The position numbers and the translations under genes were made by a program. The notes beneath the pieces were generated by a model. That model ran no database searches, had not been told where the DNA came from, and saw nothing but the letters and a program-made list of their open reading frames with translations. Positions 39,743 through 52,999 of a stretch of DNA of 64,000 nt are shown here, piece after piece. The stretch spans positions 25,606,001 through 25,670,000 of the forward strand of contig NW_027266266.1 in assembly GCF_022045235.1 (NCBI RefSeq), written 5' to 3'. This DNA comes from Haliotis cracherodii. Lineage: Eukaryota. Position 1 is the first letter of the stretch. Every line of letters begins with the position of its first letter.

Positions 39743-41257
39743 TACTCTTCAAAAAAAGAAACTTGACACTGACTTTCAAAATGTAATATAATGCGACTGT
39801 TTCAAAATAGGACGCAAAAACCATAATTGAAACACTTTTTGAAGATCAATGTATACAATGTTCAAAACATTAATCGTGTCACCTAGACACACACACGTAC
39901 ACAATACAGTTAATGTCACAGGGGTACAGAAAATGGCAGTATCGGTTGTGCCCACCACGTGCATCAATCACCGCTTGACACCGACGACCCATAGATGAAA
40001 TTAATCGTCAATAACACGCTGTTGGATGTGCTGCCATTCACGCTGAAGTGCATCAAGAAGCGTCGGATGTGTTTGTGGCGGTGGATTCCTTCTGCGAACG
40101 CGTCGATCCAACTCGTCCCACAGACGCTCAATCGGGGACAAATCTGATGACCAGACTGGCCAAGGTAATGTCAAGATGTTGTTGTGCTGTAAGAAGTCCT
40201 CACAAACACGTGCAATATGCGGTCGAGCGTAGTCCTGCTGAAACTGTCCGCCATGAACGTTGACGTGAGGAAGAACGTAAGGCTGTAGGATCAAGTCTCT
40301 GTAACGCGCACCTGTCAATGCACCTGCCACATGCACGAGAGGCGTCCTACCACCGTGATGAATTCCGGCCCATACCATGACACTCCCGCCGCCAAATGGG
40401 ACAACCTGCTGCACACAGTTGGGGGCGTAACGTTCACCCCGACGTATGTAGACACGTGGGCGCCCATCAGCATGTGTGAGTAGGAAACGGGACTCGTCAG
40501 TAAACAGTACATTTCTCCACTTTGGACGTGCCCATCTAACCCTCTGTTGGCACCAAAGCAGACGGTCCGCCAGATGACGTGGGGTCAATGCATGACGTCG
40601 AACAGGTCCTCGTGCAAAAAGTCCAGCCTCCCTCAGTCTGTTGCGTACCGTTTGATTTGATATTCTGCGTACCCCAGGGATCTGTGTGGTTGTAGACGTG
40701 GCTGTGGCAGTGCAGACTCGGAGGTGTCGTAGCCGGATGTATCGATCTTGTGCTTGGGTTGTCACCCGTGGTCTTCCTGACCTTGGTCTGTCGTCAACTC
40801 TGTTGGTGTTGTTCTATCGGGTCCACAGTGCGGAGATTGTCTGTCTGGATACGCCAAAGTGCCAGGCCACTTCTTGCTGAGTTGCTCCAGCTTGTAATCT
40901 CCCAATGGCGTTTTTCCGTTGAGCTGCATTCAGTCTTGGCATGCTGTCACCGCCTCTACTGCCGTTAGAAGTACTGTATGAACAGCCGTTGATGAGGTGT
41001 GTTTTTTATACCCATTCAGCAGGGGGGCTTGCATGCCTAAATGCAGGATCCTGTGCTGTGCGTTTTTTACAGGCGGTTGCGTTTGGATGAAGCTGTAAAA
41101 TTGATCCCCAAACTCTACGTTTATGTGCTTTGCATGTGTTTTCGCGAATTATAGACACATCATATTTCTGTTTGACTTATTTGGTTCTCATTTAATGTAA
41201 TTATTTTAGATATTTGGCAAAAAGGGGTTTTACATCTATGTCAAGTTTCTTTTTTTT
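39743..41257 (-). mobile_element. Near full-length degenerate Tc1/mariner transposon
   Basis: TIR core AAAAAAAGAAACTTGACA near both ends (outer part missing at 41257). Transposase MPRLNAAQRKNAIGRL (ATG 40942), FTDESRF, GGGSVMVWAGI, QQDYARPH, WSSDLSPIERLW; frameshifted. Confidence 0.92.
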
Positions 41258-41540: not shown

Positions 41541-44500
41541 TCACATCTTCTTTATCCAGTCCAGCTCCCACTCCTTCATGGCCTTCTTCACCTTATTCCT
41601 GCCCCTGCTCCTTTCCAGACTCCTTTTCCTCCTGTGATGGGGGATGTCATGGATGCTGAGCCCAGCCACAGCAAACCGACTCCACTTGGGGCAGGCCGTC
41701 CCCGACCAGTACTCCAGCTTCCTCTGCAGGGCGGACATGACGTTGTCCTGGTCCACCGTGTCAGTCAGATGGAACTCCACCTCAGTCACGTCCCTGTTGT
41801 AGATCATCAGGATCTAGAGCAAGATGACAATGTACAACAACGTTCGTTTGGGGATTCTAATATTTGTTGTATGTACATGTTTTTCTGTTGTGAAAGATGA
41901 GGGATGACAATGGTTCAATTTTTGTAATATGCCTGTCAGTGTCAAATGACAAGGACGAGTTCGTTTTAAAGGATCAGGGAGCCTTGGATATGATATGGCA
42001 TTGATGGAATGTCAATATTATGTTGAAAGGAACCCCGATTATGAATAATACAATGGAAATCAAATGACAGCTATTTTAAAAATAAATCGGATTTTGTCAT
42101 TCCTAAACAATCAACATTCCAGCGGATTATTTCCCTCGAATAATTGATTCATTGAGAAGCATTTCTCATGCATACCTTTATAACATCCCTCATACTGGCC
42201 ATGTCTGCCTCAGACTCTATATACACCCTCACAACGCCAGACACCTGTCTTGCAAACTCTTGTTCAACCAGAGATACTAGCGGCGAGGGGTTGTCATCGC
42301 CGCTGTACAACAACTCCTCTCTGCTCTGTTGTGGGTCAGGCTGGTACTTGGAGTTCATCAGAGGCACTGCAAGCCCACATATAGTCCTAATGTACGATGT
42401 GGTATGGGTGCTACGGTGAGTTTCATAAAATAGATGTTACACAGAATAGGAAGCCAATCCTTTAACAATAGATCACTTTGGACAAAATGTAAATTATTTT
42501 CGTTACAGAGTTATCACGTTTGTAACGAACATTTTATCATCAACAGAACATGTTTAATCAATATCAATTCATAGTAGTGTGGAGCAAAGGTCTTGACAAG
42601 ATTTCAGTGTCAAGCTGACATTTTGACACACAATACCAGACATCTTTGAAATTATTAAATTCTTAGAAATAAGCAACTAATTTCAATCACTTACTTATTA
42701 GAGAATATAGCTGCGTGTTCTCCACACATACATTGCCGTCATGACACGCCAGAGAGTGAACACTTGATTCAGCGTTGTCGATGTTGAAGAAGGCAGCCTT
42801 GTCGACTACATCTTTGAACTGGTTTTTGGCAAGCGTCAGAAAAGTGTGAACCATGCCCACGCACCCACTCACTTTCTTATTCCATGTTGTTCCTACGAAT
42901 TAGACATGTAACGCAAACTGAATTATTGCTTTAAAGATTTCGGACACGGAAGGAGACCAGGTAGCATGATTGAAAGCAGTACTTGTATCAGTAGTAGAAG
43001 AGATTGGAACGAGCAACAACAAAACAATGCACTAGTTGTCAAGTTGTGTAAAAGAACCTTGGGCGTTACAGTAGCCGTGCTTTACTTTTACATGTGAGAT
43101 ACCTTTCCCAGGACATCCTCCACAGTTGTCCAGAACACACTTCTGGAGATCCGCCTCTATCGAACTCCTGGTCATTGTGGTCCCTGCAACTTTCATCAGG
43201 TCATCTCGAAGTGTGTTGGCCTGTTGTTGTCTGTGTTCCCTGGTCTCGCGACAGAAGGGGCTCTCCCGGTCGTGGAAACAGAACCTGATGTATGTATTAA
43301 CAGGACAAAGTAGCATAGACCAGTGTTTGTCATGACGATATGACATTTGGAAGTAGGTTCGCCAGAATTGTGCAAAGCTCAGACTTGAGTAGATCACTTC
43401 ACCACATATAAGCCATTAGTTTCACCACATGTAAACTTTAGTTTCACATTTAGTAAGTTGCAAGATATGAAAAAGAAACCTCATGAATTAAACAATACTA
43501 TTATTTAAAAAAATACAACTGATGGAACTTATGCCAAGTTCCAAACGTACCCAATTGAATATGTGTTGAAGGAGTAGTATGCGAACTGTTCACCAAGCCG
43601 CGGTGTTTTACATGTCCTCCTTTGGTTCAACGGATATATTGCTGGCCCCCCTACAGAAAGAAACAATGTTTATGATACATACATAAACGTGTATCCGCTC
43701 CGATTTTACAAGAGTGAATATTACCATTGTTATTTACATTGTGTCATTGACTCTAAAGCAGTTTCATTTAGGTGTTATTTTAATGTCCATTTCTCGAGTG
43801 TTTAGAATATCGATATAAAGGTTGTCATAACCTAGTAGGAATGTCATATACTCAAATGTTATGAAAACATTATGTACCTTTTCTGAGTTCGTTCATCGTT
43901 TGATGCATGATGTCAAAGAAAGCCTTATTTCCGGCATCCCACACATCAGCTATGTCACGAACATCACCGGAAGTCATCGGTCGAATGTCGAGGTATAATT
44001 TATCACTATGACAACCAATGCCAAGGCCACGTGACTGCAGTCGAAGCGTTGGAGAACAGCTTCTCAGAAACGCTTGTCCAATACTTACAAGGACCTCTGT
44101 TGATTGGTCTGCGATTGGCGTGACATACATAGCTTGCCCTGTTTCGAATCTGAACTTTTCTTGAGGATGTCTATGGTCAACGTCACGCATGTTGATGGAA
44201 TGGGACCTGGGTGGTACAATCATGTGTGGAAACAACGTATGACATTGACATGAAAAATATCTCTTCATCTAATATCCAGTAACATATCCCACATGTCACA
44301 GTTAGTGGTGATACAAATTCTTTCAAAATGTGCACAGCTTATCTTGTCAATCGATAAAGTGTAAGATTTTTCATCTACAAGAGCAAACTGCTGCTACGTA
44401 TCCAACAGAAGATTATATGGATATCCGTTATAAAAAAATTAAGCCTTCAATATCTATACATCTTTGTCCATATACACACCTGTAAGCAGAATTTTGAATG

Positions 44501-45690
44501 ACTCTGATTTCTTTTCCAAGATCATTTACCACCATCTCTAGACAGTCAACCAGGGATGTATCGAGTCTGAAGAACCTCCTCTCTGAGTGCTTGAAGTCAG
44601 ATATCTTAAAGTGTTGCGAGAGTGCTACGTCCTTATTGAAACCATCAAACAGTAAAGACTTTCTAGACTCGTCCTTCAATTCAGTGGGGTAGGCATAGTC
44701 TTCGTCCTTGACCCCTACAGCTAACAAAGTAGTAGCCTGGAACGGCACAACAGTTGCCCTGTAGCCGTCTTGCAGCTTGACATAGACGTCAATGGATGAA
44801 GACTTGGAAGTGTCTACGAAGTCAAACCCTGCACAGTTTGCCATAGAGCGGAGCTCGGATGTGGGAGGTGTTGTGCCTGATTGTGTAGAAATCTTGAGCT
44901 TCCTGTTGATTTGGTATATACACACAATGAATCATTGGTCTCTCATGGGGTAACATATTTATAAACCTCTATTGCTGTTTGATTGTTGTTTTTTGAAAAA
45001 AATAATATCATATTCATAGTTACATATGATTGATAAAAAATGGTTATAATAATACATAAAATTAATAAATTCGAATGTTAATATATATGCATGAGTTTGG
45101 GTATTCTGTCAAACATGTGTTGTTGTTTGTTGTTTAACGCCGCACTCTGCAATTTTCCAGCTATATCACGGCGGTCTGTAAATAAAGGAGTCTGGGCCAG
45201 ACAATCCAGTGGTGGGCAACAACGTTTTAGACAGCAATATAGAACGTATATGTATATGTGTAACTTTACCTCCCATTCATTTCAAGCATGATGCCATCAG
45301 ATGTTCCTTGATGAACTGCAAGGGATGGCTTTGACACACTTAATTTTGTACCTGTAGTGTGATAATAATACAGATATACTTGGATTAACGTCTTAGGAAC
45401 GATGGAATAGTCAACACAAAGTTGTTAAAGAGTTTGTCTGTCAGCCAAAGACATTGGTTCGATTCCCGAGAAGAAGATCCGGCGTTCGATTCCCGGCCGC
45501 ATGATACCAATAGACATTAAAATATGGTACTTGTTGTTACCATGTCTGGCGCTCGGCATTGAGGGGCTCAAACAAAGACTGTTCGGCTCGGAGTCAGTAT
45601 ACTGTGTCTGAGTGGGGTATTCATGTTACACTGCAGCATGGTATCTCAATGAGCCAGCACAATAAATCGGCATCAGTCCGGACTAATACA

Positions 45691-45749
<59 letters not shown>

Positions 45750-48700
45750 GCGTGCGCACGTGTGTCACGTCGCTATATAAGTGCAATAATCTTGGACGCG
45801 ACGTTAAACCCCATTTCACCTCACCTTGACTACCCTTACAATGATACTGCGATAAGCAACCGTTCACACTGATACTAATTCAATGAAACATAAATAAATG
45901 AGGTACACTTCCAAGAATCAATCTCAGTAAAGGAACATGACATCCCAAACAATCAGAGATTCACTGGAGTAACGATTATGCTTCAAATGCATATTATTTG
46001 ACCTGTGTTTTTGCAATTCGTTCGAACGGATTCAAAAGATAAATATTTTTATTTTCAAGAGAACATTTTTGCTGAGGATTTTAACTAAAAGTATATGTAT
46101 ATTGATATACATTGAAATGTGTAATGGATCGGGAAACAAAGAATAAAAGATTACCCTCATCTCATACTAGTATGAAACAATAATACCTGAATGATGATGG
46201 TGAACAATAGCGGCCATTCGTCGTAGGCGTATCGCCATTCTTGGGGTCATGACCCTCGTCTGACACCAATCCCAGGGTTCCGTACTGTCAGACCACTTGC
46301 ACGTGCTTTTGCATCTCCTGGTCGACTGATAGCATGTTGCCGATGATGATCCCTCGGGCTTGAATATGACGTCTTCATACGGATACTGAATTAGTCTGGG
46401 GGAAATGATATTCATCTTTTAAAGATGGCAAAATTTATATGGCTTCGATGCTATATCAACACGGATACTATCAACACATACCTATATTGTAAATCATGTT
46501 CTCTCAATGGGGGGTTGATGACGTGGGAAAGCACTTGATCCTGATGATGGTTCGCTCCTTGCTTGCAAACAGTAGAACCTGACTTAAGCCCTGAAAAGAG
46601 CAGTCCCCCGTGTGTGCTTTATATGTGTTATAGTGAAGAAATGACACTTTACCTGCAAATACGAAATCAATTGAATTTTGTGATACATTCTTCCTAAAGA
46701 ATAAAAAATTAAGACAGCTCTAGTTTCGATCTCATGTTTTTTAGACACCAGTGGCATTATGAATTCAATATGGTTGGTTGGTTGGTTTGCTGTTTTACGC
46801 CGCACTCAGTAATATTCCAGCTATATGACGGCGGTCTGTGAATAATCGAGTCTGGACCAGACAATCCTGTGATTGACATCACGAGCATCGATCCACGCAA
46901 TTGGGATTGATGACATGCATCAACCAAGTCAGCGATCCTGACCACCCGATTCCGTTAGTCGCCTCTTACGGCAAGCATAGTCGCCTCTTACGGCAAGCAT
47001 AGTCGCCTTTTACGGCAAGCATGGGATGCTGAAGACCATTTCTACCCCCGATCTTCACGGGTTTATTCAATAAGGATATGCACAGTTACACACATAACGA
47101 CAGCGTGCTGGACTACTCATGCCAAATTTAGCTGACACGCCATGATATACTGAAATACGGTTTAAAGTTTCTTAAAGACGTCATACACTCATTCATAGGT
47201 GTGCCAACTCATGAAATAACAGCAACATCCGTTGACTCGCTGTATTGACCTATCCTGATTTATCTGAATCTCGTTAAATACATGAAATGCTTCTTACGAT
47301 CCCACAAATTACCACAATTTCTCTCTATATATATACCTCCTTCAAGCCTTAATAATCTTTGACTTTCTTACCAGTTTCGTTTATTGTTCTTAGAAACGAC
47401 CCTTTCTCCAAACTGTCTCCAGAAGGTCCGATGGCCGATCGCTTTGATCTTTTTTGAGGCGTTGAACCATCATGAACACAGAATTCCACATGATCGGAAG
47501 TGGCATCAAAGAAAGGGAACCCAGCGCAAGCACCTAGTTCCGCCAATCTCTTCAACACTGGGGCTGACTTTTCCAACTGCAGAGGTTTAGATTTACTCGG
47601 GTTTTCAGTTGTCAGCGCCACCTGTAAAGCTCTTCCGGAATAGTGAAGTGAGGTAGCGCCATGACTTCCGTGAGGAAGATCCGATGTTGGTTCATCCCAT
47701 GCTTCAAGCACCACCAGTTTCCCTGTAGTATATGCAAATTGTAATTATTTTTATGATAAATACATATCGTATATGCACAATTGGTATGCTATCTTACCGT
47801 GTCCTCTTTTCTCACACATACATAATACTTATACTTTTTTATATTTGTATTTCCGATATTATTATCAATAAATTACATCCACTTTATGAAACTCTCATAG
47901 CGACCTATTTATTGTCAACCATTATCTGAATGACCTTAAATTTTAAAGGCAAATCACCATGTAGCCATGCCATATATGTCTTATTTTAAGTATTTTATTA
48001 TAAGACGCTAGTCCCCATTGTTCTTAACTTCTAGTGACCTCATCCTTTTGTTTTTACCGGGCCTTCATTTTGTTTAAAAGCCTCGAAGGCTTTCCAGCAG
48101 AACGAACCTGCAACCTCGCATATTATGTTTAATATTATAACCCACTGTTTTCAATCGGAGCCATCGGCCAGGTGATGAGAAGGGGTTATCTTATATGTGA
48201 CTGACTTCAGTTGTCTGCATGCTACAGGTGGCCTTTCCTCGCCTACTGTCTTCGAATTTGTTTTATACTACGACTACGGTATTGTTTTACCACTAGGCTT
48301 TTCGATGTTTTCTTAATCTTTCTGGTATTTCTTGCATTTCGACGATTTTTAAGTTAGTTAAAACACTCATCCCCAGTTCTGGTTGCACGAATTCCCGAAT
48401 TCGATTTTTTTCATTTTCAACCAAAACGTCTTCATCACATGATTGTATTGCACATTTACTGTCGGCCAACATCATACAGCAAACATGTATTCAACCCAAA
48501 GTCATCGACTAAATATTTTCATTTTCAATCTCACACCTACTCCTTGAATTTACAGCTTATCATCATCAACTTCGCAAACGTCACGAACTCAATGGTGCAG
48601 CGCGTCCTTACAACGAATTCTTACGGTTTGGCCATTCCTGTGCGGCAAACTGGCCGAGGGTAGTCAACGCTGCTGCTGCTGCTGAAGTCATCAATCTGTC

Positions 48701-51700
48701 TGCACAAGCATCAGTCTCGCTGTCGCCATTATCACTCCACACACATTTATGACAGGGCCGCTTTGACGTTCCACACCAGGTGGCACTGTCCTTTTCTTCT
48801 GATCGGAATAGGATGAAATCGCCTCCAATCAAGGTTAATCTGAAAGCGAAATGTCGTCATTAATTATCTCAAATCGCCACGTGAGGCCGATATGACCTCA
48901 GCGATACTGAGACAGTAGATCGAAGCCTATATGGCAATGTGAACACATACTTTGTAATCATATTAAACGTTAGATTATATTATTAATTGTTTTTCGTAAA
49001 ATAGTATTATTTCATTTTGATACCACACTTATCATCCAAGTTACAATATATGTTACGCTGAAGCTACTGCCAGTAGTCAAAAGCAAAATGTAAATAAAAA
49101 AAATAAAAAAATCCATAACCATGGGAATCTCCGTTGTCCGAATCAGACCATATAAGCATGTGCTTACTTCATGAAACAAAGCCTTCTCGTGACCTTACTT
49201 CTTAAAATTGCTATCTCCTCTAACGATCGCGTGGCCTGCTGCACCACAAATGTTTTCCATGGTCTTCCCATGAACATCAGCGACTGGAGGACCACAATTT
49301 GCGGAACAGACAGTGGAGAGAGTGTCGTTAACCAATGACTTGCGAATGACGGACGTGTCCACTAAGCCCAGATCCCTAAGAGGAATAAGAAATATGACTA
49401 TGTCAAATCATTAAGACAATAGTGTTTGATCATGCTTAATTGCATAGGATCATAGATTAATACTATGATTAATCATATAACTATCGGGTGTCCTTGGCAT
49501 GTTAATAACAATCTGTTGTGCAATGGGTATGATTATTAATGCATGTCAAGGGCAAGCAATAACAAAACGAAAGTGAAAAGTAATTAATTTACCATATGGT
49601 TTTATGGAAAGCTTTAGCCACAAAATCTGACTTGTCGAAGGTAAATATCCCGTCAACTGTGAGCGTGGCTGTTTCACAGCGACTGTATTCATCCTCGGTA
49701 GTTCGGGCGTACAGGACAGGCCTAAAACTTGCAACTTCCGGGGGCGTGAACACAAGGGAAACATCATGCTGAGACCACTGAACAGAAGCTTGTAAAGTGA
49801 CCTGGCAGACAAGAGGATAAATATTTTTAAAAAAATCAAATATATTCATGTAAAATAATGATTAGTATCGTTATTACTGTAAGGTGAGGAGACGTGAGAT
49901 GGTGTTTAGCGTCGCTTTCAAGATTATTTCACTTCTATGCCGACGTGCATGTATCCGTTTTTGTGTGACTGCTTGTGCTAGCCACACTGGACATGTACTA
50001 GTGCCGTATTGCTAACCCAAGGCGATACCATGCCGCAGATAACTTGGCTACCCCATTCAGACATATTTGACTGACAGTCATCTTAATGCCGAATGGCAGG
50101 CAGTGTAACAAGTACCATCTGTTAACGTCTTTTGATATACCGCGGCCAGGGATCGAACCCCCGACCTTAAGCTCTCCTATTATTGAAAGGACAAAGCCAA
50201 ATAGATGATACAAGAGTTGATATTGACACCTACGATCAGCGATTTCACGTAAGGTGAGGTAAAATTGGGTTTTACGTCGCTTCCAAGATTATCGCACTTA
50301 TATAGCGACGTGCATGCACGTGTGTGTGTGTGGCTGCTTGGACTAGTCCGGACTGATGCCGATTTATAGTGCTAGCCCACTGAGATACCATGCCGCAGTT
50401 TAACATGAATACCCAACTCAGACACATTATACTGACTCCGAGCCGACAAGTCCCTGTTTAGGACGATCTACCTCTTGACCACGGAGGCGGTCGGTTTCAC
50501 GTAAACATTAATTTCTGTCACGCTGACACCCATATTGACGATCAATATAATCATCACAACAGTATATGGTCTCACCTCTTGATAAAGGGACATCGAAAAG
50601 TTGTACTTGTTTGTGGAATGCCCGCTGAATGAATGGCCTGGTAATGACCAGCCAGTTGTAGTCAACTCCGTTTTCGGAATCTGCCCTGATGCTTCAGATG
50701 AGGCTGAATTCAAATATGATTATATATTCAAGTGTTTCTTATTCCAAAGATAGATACAGTACAGTAGTTGAAACTGGTAAATATATATAAAGCGGGCATA
50801 AAGATATCACTTTAGCATTACTCAATCACGGTAGACCAATACAAGTACATGGTAACTATTACTTAAAATCTTCATTACTATTTCTCTAAAAAAAATTCTG
50901 CACATGAGCTTCAGCAATTATGATACGATAATGACAATTAATACTCCATACTTGCAGTATAATTTCCTTGTACATGATATTTTCCACTGAAGTTGACTGG
51001 TCCATCAGATGTTGCGTTGACGTCTAAATATACAGTTTTGTGATATGAGATAACTAGTTGTATGGCTGGTAGTTTCTCATTCACCGTTGCAACTGGAATA
51101 GTCCGTAATATCGTTGTGGGAGTCTTGTCTAAGATAAGTTTTTCCTTGACGCCGACGGCTTTTCTGAAGTCCACGTCTAAGGCAACGTTGTAAATTGTAC
51201 CGACGTCGCCCTGAAACGTTTCTGAAGGTGTTACCGAAAGCACCGCTTTGTGGATTGTCTAATATCTTTTTAATATCGCAAGTGTTAGTTTTAGGTTTGT
51301 CCTTCGAGTTTGGTCAAGAATTACTGAAAAGCGATACATTCAAAAAGTTTTAGAACTATTTGAAAAATTGCATACAACCTGCATAAGGAATTTCTTGACA
51401 ATAGCTGTCTTGTTTCGTCTCTCAATGTCAAGTTCCCTGTAACAGAAGATGATTTGTTTTAAATGTTTTGTCAGTTTGAATGAAACATTTGGAGCAACGG
51501 TTGTGCCATTTTTTATTTTTTTTTATTTTCTGAATAGTTTGATTGTGTACATCTGAAATGAAAGATATGATATACATACTTCCCAATGTTCGATGTTTCA
51601 ATATTGTGTTCTGATATATATTGCATAATAATACTTACATTGTATGCCCAACGTGTCTCACTTCAAAACAATCCTTGCAGGTGAGGCGAAAGTCAACATC

Positions 51701-52999
51701 TCGAGGAATGGCACTAGTTTTACCTTTGCTGATCTTTTCGACCTTGACCTCCTTGTTACCCTGCTCCTTGTATACATTGTATGTATAGATCGAGTGATTT
51801 GTCTTGGCATCAAAGTTAAAGTTGATGGACTCGTCGCCATCGGTGGCATGGAAGTTGATTTTGTCCAAAACGTTAGAGAGAAGATTGGACACGAATCTTT
51901 TCTGACGATGACCATGTTTATTGGTTAAGTGGGGATATTTGAGAAACACCTGTGCTTCCTGAAGTAGATCTATGGCGCTGAAAATAGATAAACGGAAACA
52001 ATAAATGACAATCGACAGAAATCGCAACAATTACATACACTATATGACATTTGTGCAAGGTGTTGGTTACCTGACGTCGATGCCTTCAACCTTGACCTTT
52101 GTATGACTGACGATATTTACGCGTTTTATTTTCCTCACAATGGCGACGCGTTTGAACTCTAATCCATGCCTTTGTCGGACATTGGTGCTCATCAAATACC
52201 ATCCTGTTTGCCACCCGGAAGCAACCGAAGTGTCCCGAAGATTCACGATTATCTGCCCTTTGCTGTTTTCGGCAACCTAAAATGAACAGTAAGAAAATAA
52301 GGATCAGTGTTATAAGGCTCATTTAATGTTGCCCGCAGTCATTGAACAATGGGTATACTATCTTATGGCTTCACGACTGGGAAACAACTATTATTACACG
52401 CATTGATTTACGCAAAAATGAATGCATGAACATATAACCCTTGAAGATACGGGTTAGAATTAATCGTCAGCAACACATGCTTCTCAGGAGATGCGACTAA
52501 CGGGATGGGGTGGTTAATCTCGCTGAAGTGGTTCATGCATGCCATCGTATCCAATTTACATAGATCTGTGCTCATGATATCAATCACTGGATTGTCTGAT
52601 CAAACTCGAGTGTTTACACACCGCTGTCATAGAGCTGGAATATTGCTGAGCGAGGCGTTAAACAGCAAACACACAAAGAAATCATCAGCATATAAACAGT
52701 TAATATTTATGTTACGACGTTGAACAATGTGAAACATAAGAAGGTTTCAGGAGCAAAAAAATCATTAATGTGTTCATTATTTTTTGTACGCAATTTATAT
52801 TCACTGAGACTGTACATACACTGACGTCAGGCAGGACATCGAGATTGACAATGTGTGACAAGAGACCTCTGGAGTTCAGTTCCCATTCAGCATCGTCATC
52901 AACGTCTTTACCTCGACTTTGGTGTTTAAATCGACGCCAGCCATTGATAGTGCGAATACAAAATACGCAGAAAACAGCCCATAACACAACAATCTTCAT
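41541..52999 (-). CDS. Gene C: about 1420-aa secreted multidomain protein with two Hedgehog N-terminal-like (Hedge) domains and a degenerate peptidase M15A-like domain; no Hint domain (not a hedgehog ortholog)
   Basis: Exons (minus): 52999-52820, 52276-52071, 51977-51639, 51436-51379, 51258-50952, 50703-50576, 49801-49593, 49375-49199, 48839-48625, 47722-47372, 46590-46482, 46395-46187, 45351-45270, 44902-44480, 44206-43878, 43650-43551, 43284-43103, 42892-42695, 42366-42176, 41813-41541; sum 4266 nt, in frame. Signal peptide MKIVVLWAVFCVFCIRTING. Motifs FILFRSEE..ADRLMT..EWPNRKLVVLEAWDE..SLHYSGRA..LAELGACAGF..HVEFCV match Hedgehog-N. The acceptor at 51258 is weak and uncertain. Confidence 0.82.
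43978..44620 (-). other. Peptidase M15A-like (LAS/DD-peptidase fold) domain of gene C, catalytically degenerate
   Basis: LSQHFKISDF..RLDTSLVDCLE..LGKEIRV..SAYRSHSIN..FRFETGQAMYV..GLGIGC..LYLDIRP parallels bacterial M15A LSxHFxxxEF..IDxxLVxxLExLR..GxPIxIxSGYR..N..SxHxxGxAxD..GxGxY..FVHxDxR. Confidence 0.75.
44776..46570 (-). other. Hedge domain 2 of gene C (more degenerate)
   Basis: YPYEDVIFKPE..QTRVMTPRMAIRLRRMA..KLSV..MNGRKLKIST..ELRSMANCAGFDFVD..IDVYVK; same motif order as Hedge domain 1. Confidence 0.75.
45450..45826 (+). mobile_element. SINE family 4 with expanded (CA)n(CG)n microsatellite
   Basis: Homology to 34028-34362; (CA)n then (CG)n at about 45693-45760. Confidence 0.8.
46772..47063 (-). 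mobile_element. SINE-like repeat, family 2, with internal 22-bp triplication
   Basis: Homology to 613-853; AGTCGCCT(C/T)TTACGGCAAGCAT repeated three times at about 46957-47022. Confidence 0.85.
47475..49260 (-). other. Hedge domain 1 of gene C (Hedgehog N-terminal signalling-domain fold), split over 3 exons
   Basis: ENICGAAGHAIVRGDSNFKKL / DFILFRSEE / ADRLMT / QEWPNRKLVVLEAWDE / SLHYSGRALQV / LKRLAELGACAGF / HVEFCV align by eye with Hh EKTLGASG..RFKEL / DIIFKDEE / ADRLMT / QWPGVKLRVTEGWDE / SLHYEGRAVDI / LARLAVEAGF / HIHCSV. Confidence 0.9.
49880..50460 (-). mobile_element. Two adjacent SINE family 4 copies in gene C intron
   Basis: Copies at about 49880-50175 (with B box GGGATCGAACCC) and about 50250-50460 (5'-truncated). 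Confidence 0.75.
52437..52672 (+). mobile_element. SINE-like repeat, family 2 (diverged)
   Basis: Homology to 613-853. Confidence 0.75.

Follow-up and report, generated by a model that had tools for sequence, protein, structure and literature searches.

A probable zinc-less Peptidase_M15_3-type domain beside Hedge in a secreted protein family of Haliotis cracherodii

We analysed a stretch of 64,000 nucleotides from Haliotis cracherodii (contig NW_027266266.1, positions 25,606,001 to 25,670,000; hereafter the window), taken from a genome of 1.18 Gb in 80 contigs. The window carries a multi-exon gene whose product contains, behind two hedgehog signalling (Hedge) domains, a domain related to Peptidase_M15_3. 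The gene lies on the minus strand, to which all gene coordinates below refer, and its features are collected in Table 1. Residues 1-1404 of P0001, a Haliotis asinina protein of 1404 amino acids (aa) annotated as 'uncharacterized', were matched by 18 collinear tblastn pieces running from 52999 to 41544 with 58-94% identity, and the two exons that encode the domain, exons A and B, matched it with 77% identity. The gene product is a secreted protein of ~1400 aa composed of an N-terminal region, Hedge 1, Hedge 2, the M15_3-like domain and a conserved C-terminal region. Pfam detects HH_signal twice in P0001.

The first ~40 residues of exon A form the tail of Hedge 2, reading ..ANCAGFDFVDTSKSSSIDVYVK. 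The exon closes at 44480 with N-S-A-Y and AG, the first two bases of an Arg codon, followed by GTGTGT. Exon B, which is preceded by ..CCACCCAG, opens at 44206 with the G that completes this codon, continues with S-H-S-I-N-M and reads SHSINMRD..KFRFETGQAMYV..GLGIGCHSDKLYLDIRP. To this we added contigs from four sequencing runs, belonging to four studies and carrying four organism labels, which were only guessed to be RNA; we took them as such because spliced contigs would be hard to explain otherwise. The intron within the SAYR motif was skipped exactly at 44205/7-44477/9 in contigs of all four runs (joint 44204>44478, 273 bases skipped), with CT..AC on the plus strand corresponding to GT..AG on the minus strand, and the three neighbouring introns were likewise skipped in contigs of every run. 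A single contig of 1105 bases spans five joined exons with 0-4 mismatches per exon, and contig depth was ~10-19 where the intron was covered versus 300-500 at the exons. P0001 is continuous over both junctions of the domain and reads NTAYRSHSINL at the SAYR junction. These results bear out the claim of a preliminary description of this DNA that a spliceosomal intron in SAYR marks a real host gene and not contamination. On this evidence the gene is also intact and expressed.

Table 1. Features of the gene in the window (positions of the window) and its paralogs in the genome
Feature	Position	Strand	Evidence
Whole gene	41544..52999	-	18 collinear tblastn pieces
Upstream exon, part of Hedge 2	45270..45354 (upper end provisional)	-	joint 44901>45269 (cut +1) in 4/4 runs; tblastn piece 45352-45269
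Exon A: Hedge 2 tail, conserved linker, N-terminal half of M15_3-like domain	44480..44902	-	RNA joints at both ends
Intron, 273 bases, GT..AG, within R codon of SAYR	44207..44479	-	sequence; skipped by contigs of 4/4 runs
Exon B: C-terminal half of domain, all three former zinc-ligand positions	43878..44206	-	RNA joints at both ends
Next downstream exon, start of conserved C-terminal region	43551..43650	-	joints 43649>43877 (cut +1) and 43282>43549 (cut +2) in 4/4 runs
Domain core, LSQHF to LDIR, as delimited in the preliminary description	43981..44622	-	sequence; hhalign aligned span
F-R-F at S-x-H positions (F 44152-44154; F 44146-44148 = former first ligand His)	44146..44154	-	hhalign, family alignment
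Y at zinc-ligand Asp (G-x-A-x-D = GQAMY; AxD = A-M-Y)	44125..44127	-	hhalign, family alignment
Y at second zinc-ligand His (H-x-D = YLD)	43993..43995	-	hhalign, family alignment
L006, paralog	C3:25358514-25358849		
L005, paralog	C3:25519598-25519936		
L007 and L008, paralogs on another contig	C45:66272602 and C45:66552359		

Five copies of the gene, including that of the window, are present in the genome. Two of them (L005 and L006) are near-identical to it, lie on the same contig at distances of 130 and 290 kb and share the SAYR intron; synonymous divergence (dS) between these neighbours is 0.02-0.03, and they are therefore recent duplicates. In L007 and L008 the whole domain stands in one open reading frame (ORF) of 257 aa without the SAYR intron (SGYRTQSVNM across that point), and these frames align with the window exons residue for residue over the junction. 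L007 and P0001 served as whole-domain stand-ins for the two exons of the window.

Kinship of the domain was assessed by an exhaustive profile search with an alignment of eight paralog rows (E <= 0.001). The search returned 78 proteins, 42 of them at <= 1e-10 and 24 at <= 1e-30. Three distant matches are called Peptidase_M15_3 by Pfam above its cut-off (PF08291, gathering score 23.2 bits) and form a bridge to the known family: P0069 (profile E 7.2e-5; PF08291 57.7 bits) and P0072 (2.1e-4; 24.7 bits) retain the full S-x-H..G-x-A-x-D and H-x-D, and P0063 (7.6e-6; 32.6 bits) retains both His with the Asp replaced. The family was then compared by hhalign through its remaining 71 rows, P0063, P0069, P0072 and P0066 having been removed to avoid circularity. 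It scored 99.7% against seven eukaryote-type intact M15_3 proteins (E 8.5e-27, 152 columns) and 97.5% (up to 97.6%) against nine bacterial and phage M15_3 proteins (E 8.6e-12, and 3.8e-12 in one comparison; 111 columns), versus 0.2% (E 0.26, 16 columns) and 1.7% (E 0.03, 42 columns), respectively, for the reversed family. An independent language-model look-up of P0001 residues 915-1090 in the ESM Atlas gave scores of 0.93-0.94 for its three best named clusters, which were mostly of phage; two of them carry PF08291. The profile bridge and the hhalign scores against reversed controls thus indicate common ancestry with Peptidase_M15_3, as the preliminary description had supposed in assigning the domain to the M15A type. 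A chance likeness of short motifs with no real M15 kinship, which the blank Pfam, NCBIfam and PDB sequence searches would allow, is highly improbable in view of these E values and of the structural matches below, the ten best of which are all of one type. Judged by these profile comparisons, homology to Peptidase_M15_3 is real yet invisible to curated models.

The closest intact relatives found are the eukaryote-type proteins, and the proposed bacterial-like or horizontally acquired character of the domain was not upheld. Nor does the domain itself answer to the Hedgehog signalling-domain family (PF01085): in P0001, P0003 and P0005, HH_signal matches only regions upstream of it, and the family scored only 26% (E 7e-4, 59 columns) against the Hedge domains of the same proteins.

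One set of matches from the sequence searches was rejected as an artefact. The 'Cake' designer propellers (PDB 6tjb-6tji, E 5e-13) owe their score to a 17-residue chance match summed over identical repeats, with no single stretch significant, an instance of the trap that repeat proteins set in profile searches. The hedgehog rows of the PDB sequence search matched only the Hedge 2 tail included in the profile; a profile that took in this part of exon A matched solved hedgehog chains at their C-terminal end. When proteins were searched by words with the 257-aa ORF of a paralog, none of the 546 candidates received a score; the proteins covered were ~141-450 aa long, and the relatives are mostly longer.

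The scaffold motifs of the family are all present in the window: LSQHF (44608-44622), SAYR..N, GQA, GLGIG and LDIR (ending at 43981). Ligand positions were mapped onto the S-x-H..G-x-A-x-D and H-x-D of real M15_3 proteins by hhalign (109 aligned columns) together with the family alignment. In the hhalign alignment the first His is matched by F, the Asp by the Y of the window and the last His by Y, so that none of the His-Asp-His zinc ligands of M15_3 and M15A is left; the replacement of all three, as first read from the sequence, holds. The Arg of S-x-Y-R (its codon split by the intron), the Asn, the G-x-A and the Asp and Arg of (H)-x-D-x-R are retained, the last two at 43987-43989 and 43981-43983, after the Y of YLD. 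The type M15A enzyme has zinc ligands H154, D161 and H197, as given in passages of PMC11266112, and its R138 aligns with the Arg of S-x-Y-R.

An AlphaFold2 model of the L007 domain, built from eight sequences, had a mean predicted local distance difference test score (pLDDT) of 64.8 and a predicted template modelling score (pTM) of 0.68; the core lay mostly at 70-93, and two loops fell below 50. When this model was compared with 48,161 chains by VIA-align, rank 1 was 1lbu_A, the Streptomyces albus zinc DD-peptidase that is the type M15A enzyme (Z 8.3, root-mean-square deviation 2.9 A, 115 aligned). Ranks 2-10 comprised three hedgehog entries (Z 5.2-5.8), the RB49 and T5 L-alanoyl-D-glutamate peptidases, VldE, LysB4, Ply500 and VanX, with VanXYg, VanYB, VanXYc and MepA in lower rows. 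We gave weight to this result because all ten best rows are of one structural kind, the name of which we take to be LAS. The domain is predicted, as modelled on the paralog L007, to have the LAS fold.

Conservation was tallied over the aligned segments (75 in the family alignment, L006 rows left out of the tallies). At the first His position the whole family has F 24, H 17, Y 9 and L 7 of 67, and the mollusc clade F 23, Y 6 and H 4 of 34, so that F or Y stands in 29/34. At the last His position the figures are Y 41, H 10 and F 8 of 65 for the family and Y in 29/30 for the mollusc clade. The Asp position reads E 32, Q 8, R 5, V 5, Y 4 and D 2 of 69 in the family, and E 22 and Y 3 of 33 in the mollusc clade. 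By these counts, aromatic replacement is conserved at only two of the three ligand positions, both of them former His; the aromatic replacements first read at all three in the window are therefore conserved at the His positions, and not at the Asp position. Elsewhere in the domain, G was found in 69/71 rows, A in 54/70, the D of x-D-x-R in 47/62 and its R in 48/58, two Cys in 66/71 and 66/70, and the Arg of S-x-Y-R in 31/69.

The ratio of nonsynonymous to synonymous divergence (dN/dS) between the window and L005 was 0.20 for exon A and 0.31 for exon B, and that between L007 and L008 was 0.23. Among 15 listed differences between the exons and the RNA contigs, 9 were synonymous and 6 conservative, with 34 further differences beyond those listed. 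The domain is clearly under purifying selection.

Two His residues of the mollusc clade stand near the former metal site in sequence: that of R-H (exon B residues 12-13), present in 24/33 rows, and that of G-C-H (exon B residues 64-66), six residues ahead of the former second His, where G-x-H occurs in 23/31 rows. If E, H or Y at the Asp position is added to them, they could be read as a rewired metal centre, which would possibly leave the domain an enzyme. The frequencies of both His and of E at the Asp position (22/33) in the clade speak for this, as does the H of Haliotis asinina at that position. Against it, the copy in the window has Y there, both His are missing outside molluscs, and the R-H loop has a pLDDT below 50 in the model, which leaves the closeness of these residues in space putative. 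We consider a rewired metal centre very unlikely.

The taxonomic range of the family was taken from those profile matches that carry source names. Members were found in the gastropods Haliotis and Batillaria, in the bivalves Sinanodonta, Saccostrea and Solemya, and in Octopus; beyond molluscs they occur in a starfish, a crinoid, a hemichordate, amphioxus, the sponge Oscarella and a choanoflagellate. In the mollusc proteins the M15_3-like domain lies directly C-terminal to the second Hedge, where Pfam sees only the two HH_signal domains, and the didomain of Hedge and M15_3-like domain followed by the conserved C-terminal region was found in the window gene, P0001, P0003 and P0005. Throughout the family the domain keeps the same position beside Hedge. 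In the two-copy members run through Pfam, namely amphioxus P0037, crinoid P0070, sponge P0076 and choanoflagellate P0043, two copies of the domain flank one Hedge; the other deuterostome matches likewise have two copies at similar positions. Upstream of this domain-Hedge-domain unit, P0043 (2145 aa) carries C2 and Peptidase_M15_4 (40.8 bits, above the Pfam cut-off), and P0076 (2253 aa) carries trypsin and PLAT.

A tree was built by a quick method from 80 rows and 127 columns, leaving out the exon halves of the window, L005 and L006 and segments with fewer than 100 filled core columns. The mollusc copies form one clade (97), and the eight bacterial and phage rows form another (99) inside a clade of intact M15_3 (98). 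The phylogenetic check proposed beforehand thus separated the bacterial and phage rows from the mollusc clade, but left the deep order open: 38 of 77 inner branches are open, and the tree resolves clades but not deep order, for which reason no donor or rooting was drawn from it. The pair of Hedge and M15_3-like domain occurs in molluscs and deuterostomes and also in a sponge and a choanoflagellate, and its origin is therefore old. Sequence distribution thus argues for an old pair of vertical ancestry, neither specific to snails nor acquired by recent bacterial transfer. A recent transfer from bacteria or phages into the snail lineage, or an assembly contamination, might have been suggested by the mostly phage look-alikes in the Atlas and by M15_3 being, in the control genomes, mainly a bacterial and phage family. 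It is already contradicted by GT..AG introns spliced in RNA, by the position of the domain inside an 18-piece collinear host gene, by the same arrangement of Hedge and domain across six animal groups and a choanoflagellate, and by the separate clade of the bacterial and phage rows, and we give it next to no probability. Contamination, chance similarity and recent transfer were all rejected, on the spliced RNA, the hhalign controls and the old distribution.

Taken as a whole, the evidence leads us to regard the domain as probably a zinc-less, non-catalytic pseudo-peptidase of the M15_3 type that lies beside Hedge and serves as a binding or scaffold module. Because no His-Asp-His metal centre is left, the domain would be unable to act as a zinc peptidase and would thus be a pseudo-peptidase. 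Where the two His once stood, the conserved aromatic pair most likely occupies the vacated zinc site and stabilises it; for Shh, only the title of a work cited in PMC11266112 points to a role of zinc in stability. The remaining cleft and the adjoining Hedge may together offer a non-catalytic surface that binds or scaffolds an extracellular partner, for which a protein, a glycan of the extracellular matrix and a fragment of bacterial cell wall are all candidates.

Several observations weigh against this reading. Neither exon ORF has a Pfam or NCBIfam match, neither of the two intronless paralog ORFs has a Pfam match at E <= 10, and a six-frame genome search with PF08291 gave three matches, to a true hedgehog gene and two weak places, and missed the window locus; the hidden Markov model check against Peptidase_M15_3 that the preliminary description had put forward thus gave no direct match for exons or paralogs, and the window domain falls outside the curated PF08291 model by all three routes. 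PDB sequence searches of the domain returned no M15 chain. The fold is predicted from a paralog copy, which is ~40% identical to the window domain and was modelled with a pLDDT of 64.8. Foldseek of the L007 model returned nothing at E <= 0.001, with MepA, VldE and VanXYc among the weak rows, and the top VIA-align Z of 8.3 barely exceeds the common background of 7-8 stated for that program. That the three replacing aromatics of the window lie in the cleft is predicted from alignment and not from coordinates. Near relatives differ at the Asp position, where the window has Y, Haliotis asinina H and most molluscs E, which argues against a fixed three-residue binding site. The binding partner is so far only putative.

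Compared with Peptidase_M15_3 (PF08291; in MEROPS, the M15A-type D,D- and L,D-peptidases, zinc enzymes of bacteria and phages), of which eukaryote-type secreted members were found in P0069, P0088-P0090 and P0063, the domain carries its motifs in the same order (LS-x-x-F-x-x-x-(D/E)-F, S-x-Y-R-x-x-x-x-N, G-x-A, G-x-G and x-x-D-x-R) and is predicted, from the paralog model, to have the same fold (1lbu_A, Z 8.3). With the eukaryote-type members it further has in common R-Y-F-R-L-x-P-x-L-x-E-C-L, two Cys and an N-terminal Y-x-x-P..L-F-D extension. It differs in the replacement of all three zinc ligands, in receiving no score from the Pfam model and in sitting after Hedge in an animal protein of 1400 aa. 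Hedge (PF01085) resembles it in the LAS fold predicted from the model (ShhN, Z 5.4-5.8) and in being extracellular, but is set apart by the low hhalign score and the upstream HH_signal matches given above.

Non-catalytic peptidoglycan recognition proteins (PGRPs) have lost zinc ligands and retained binding; theirs is an unrelated fold (Amidase_2), and the parallel is one of analogy, with no sequence or structural link. By this analogy, the aromatic-lined former active site could be a dedicated, PGRP-like sensor of peptidoglycan or glycans, with a response in immunity or feeding downstream of it. Sugar-binding sites often contain aromatic residues, and ancestry among cell-wall peptidases, the retained substrate-side Arg of S-x-Y-R and the Peptidase_M15_4 in the same chain of choanoflagellate P0043 would also fit. 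We nevertheless consider such a sensor, which the preliminary description had suggested, unlikely: it is putative only, the aromatic at the Asp position is not conserved (E in 22/33 mollusc-clade rows), no immune context was seen, the sole expression mention found being an oyster spawning study, and in Shh it is proteins that bind at the pseudo-active site (PMC11266112, in part). In the excerpt of that source, these binders are HHIP, Ptc1-derived peptides and an inhibitory antibody.

The oyster study (PMC12564202) gives its Saccostrea relative as 'uncharacterised' in the accessible part of its spawning transcriptome table, and this protein, P0022 (Saccostrea echinata LOC133197027), is listed there twice as higher in 'Male Pre-spawn', with values of 4.14 and 2.45.

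Shh, a debated pseudo-peptidase according to passages of PMC11266112, reuses a peptidase fold for binding, as the present domain may do; it retains H140, D147 and H182 and binds zinc (same passages), whereas the window domain retains none of these ligands. Rusticalin of ascidians is, in the portion of PMC6339383 at hand, likewise an animal protein, and its C-terminal domain goes back to a cell-wall metallopeptidase; unlike the present family it resembles the L-alanyl-D-glutamate peptidase of phage A500, was argued to stem from phage-mediated transfer and has no Hedge partner. Roelink placed hedgehog in an Hh/DD-peptidase family (excerpts of PMC6027127 and PMC8052667), and Drosophila Hh is described in an excerpt of PMC6027127 as being without the Hh/DD-peptidase motif. 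Whether the ligand domain of hedgehog arose from cell-wall peptidases is a matter of debate (PMC6027127 and PMC2362128, both in part). The accessible text of Burglin 2008 (PMC2362128) describes Hedge genes without Hog in Nematostella and in a sponge expressed sequence tag and contains 0 occurrences of 'peptidase'; this sponge sequence may belong to the family of Hedge and M15_3-like domain. Full-text searches, which did not extend to supplements that possibly hold more, turned up no literature description of this family, and it is apparently undescribed.

In the window gene itself, the Hedge 1 exon (47349-47714, minus) reads by eye S-L-H-Y-S-G-R-A-L-Q-V and H-V-E-F-C-V at the Asp and last-His sites of Shh; by comparison with the Shh motifs, the zinc site of Hedge 1 presumably looks altered too. 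Another observation concerns P0091 (206 aa, from an ENA contig of 28 kb), a gene model that runs from the final third of an M15_3 domain of intact type, with 75% identity to P0069, into the end of a Hint module (PF01079, 70.2 bits); P0069 and P0085 are its relatives. P0091 may be a eukaryotic M15_3-Hint ('Hog') protein or a mis-joined prediction.

Because P0043 carries M15_4 and P0091 joins M15_3 to Hint, a wider reading can be put forward tentatively, as possible though rather doubtful. The pair of Hedge and M15_3-like domain would be an ancient holozoan module and a living intermediate on the way from a bacterial-wall peptidase to the hedgehog ligand, with the zinc-less domain as the retained partner of Hedge in a branch independent of Hint. 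If this were true, two diverged descendants of cell-wall peptidases would stand side by side in one secreted chain.

Other features of the gene and its surroundings were noted. The C-terminal region of ~310 aa (41544-43650, minus; P0001 residues 1091-1404) is common to the whole family and contains a C-G-G-C motif and dibasic sites of the R-R-K-R-S type; it belongs to no Pfam family, and its best ESM Atlas score was only 0.75, with no look-alike. In the intron upstream of exon A, contig word depth over the segment 45106-45186 rose as high as ~245,000, with numerous loose ends, in each of the four runs; the segment is a highly repeated, transcribed element that perhaps resembles a short interspersed nuclear element. 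Just downstream of the gene, an open frame of 254 aa (40001-40765, minus) was labelled, from reading its sequence, as like a transposase of the Tc1/mariner type, and a similar transposase N-terminal fragment adjoins the paralog on C45 (L007 462-797).

What is new here is apparently a zinc-less variant of a known fold in an ancient hedgehog-related family, the domain pairing of which is old and widespread in animals. Within a single protein, the family sets Hedge beside a second domain of M15 type that diverged separately, and it provides a gene set for asking what non-catalytic LAS domains bind, whether aromatic packing compensates for zinc loss, and how Hedge worked before or without Hint. 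For the snail, it adds one more uncharacterised secreted protein family, with five genomic copies.

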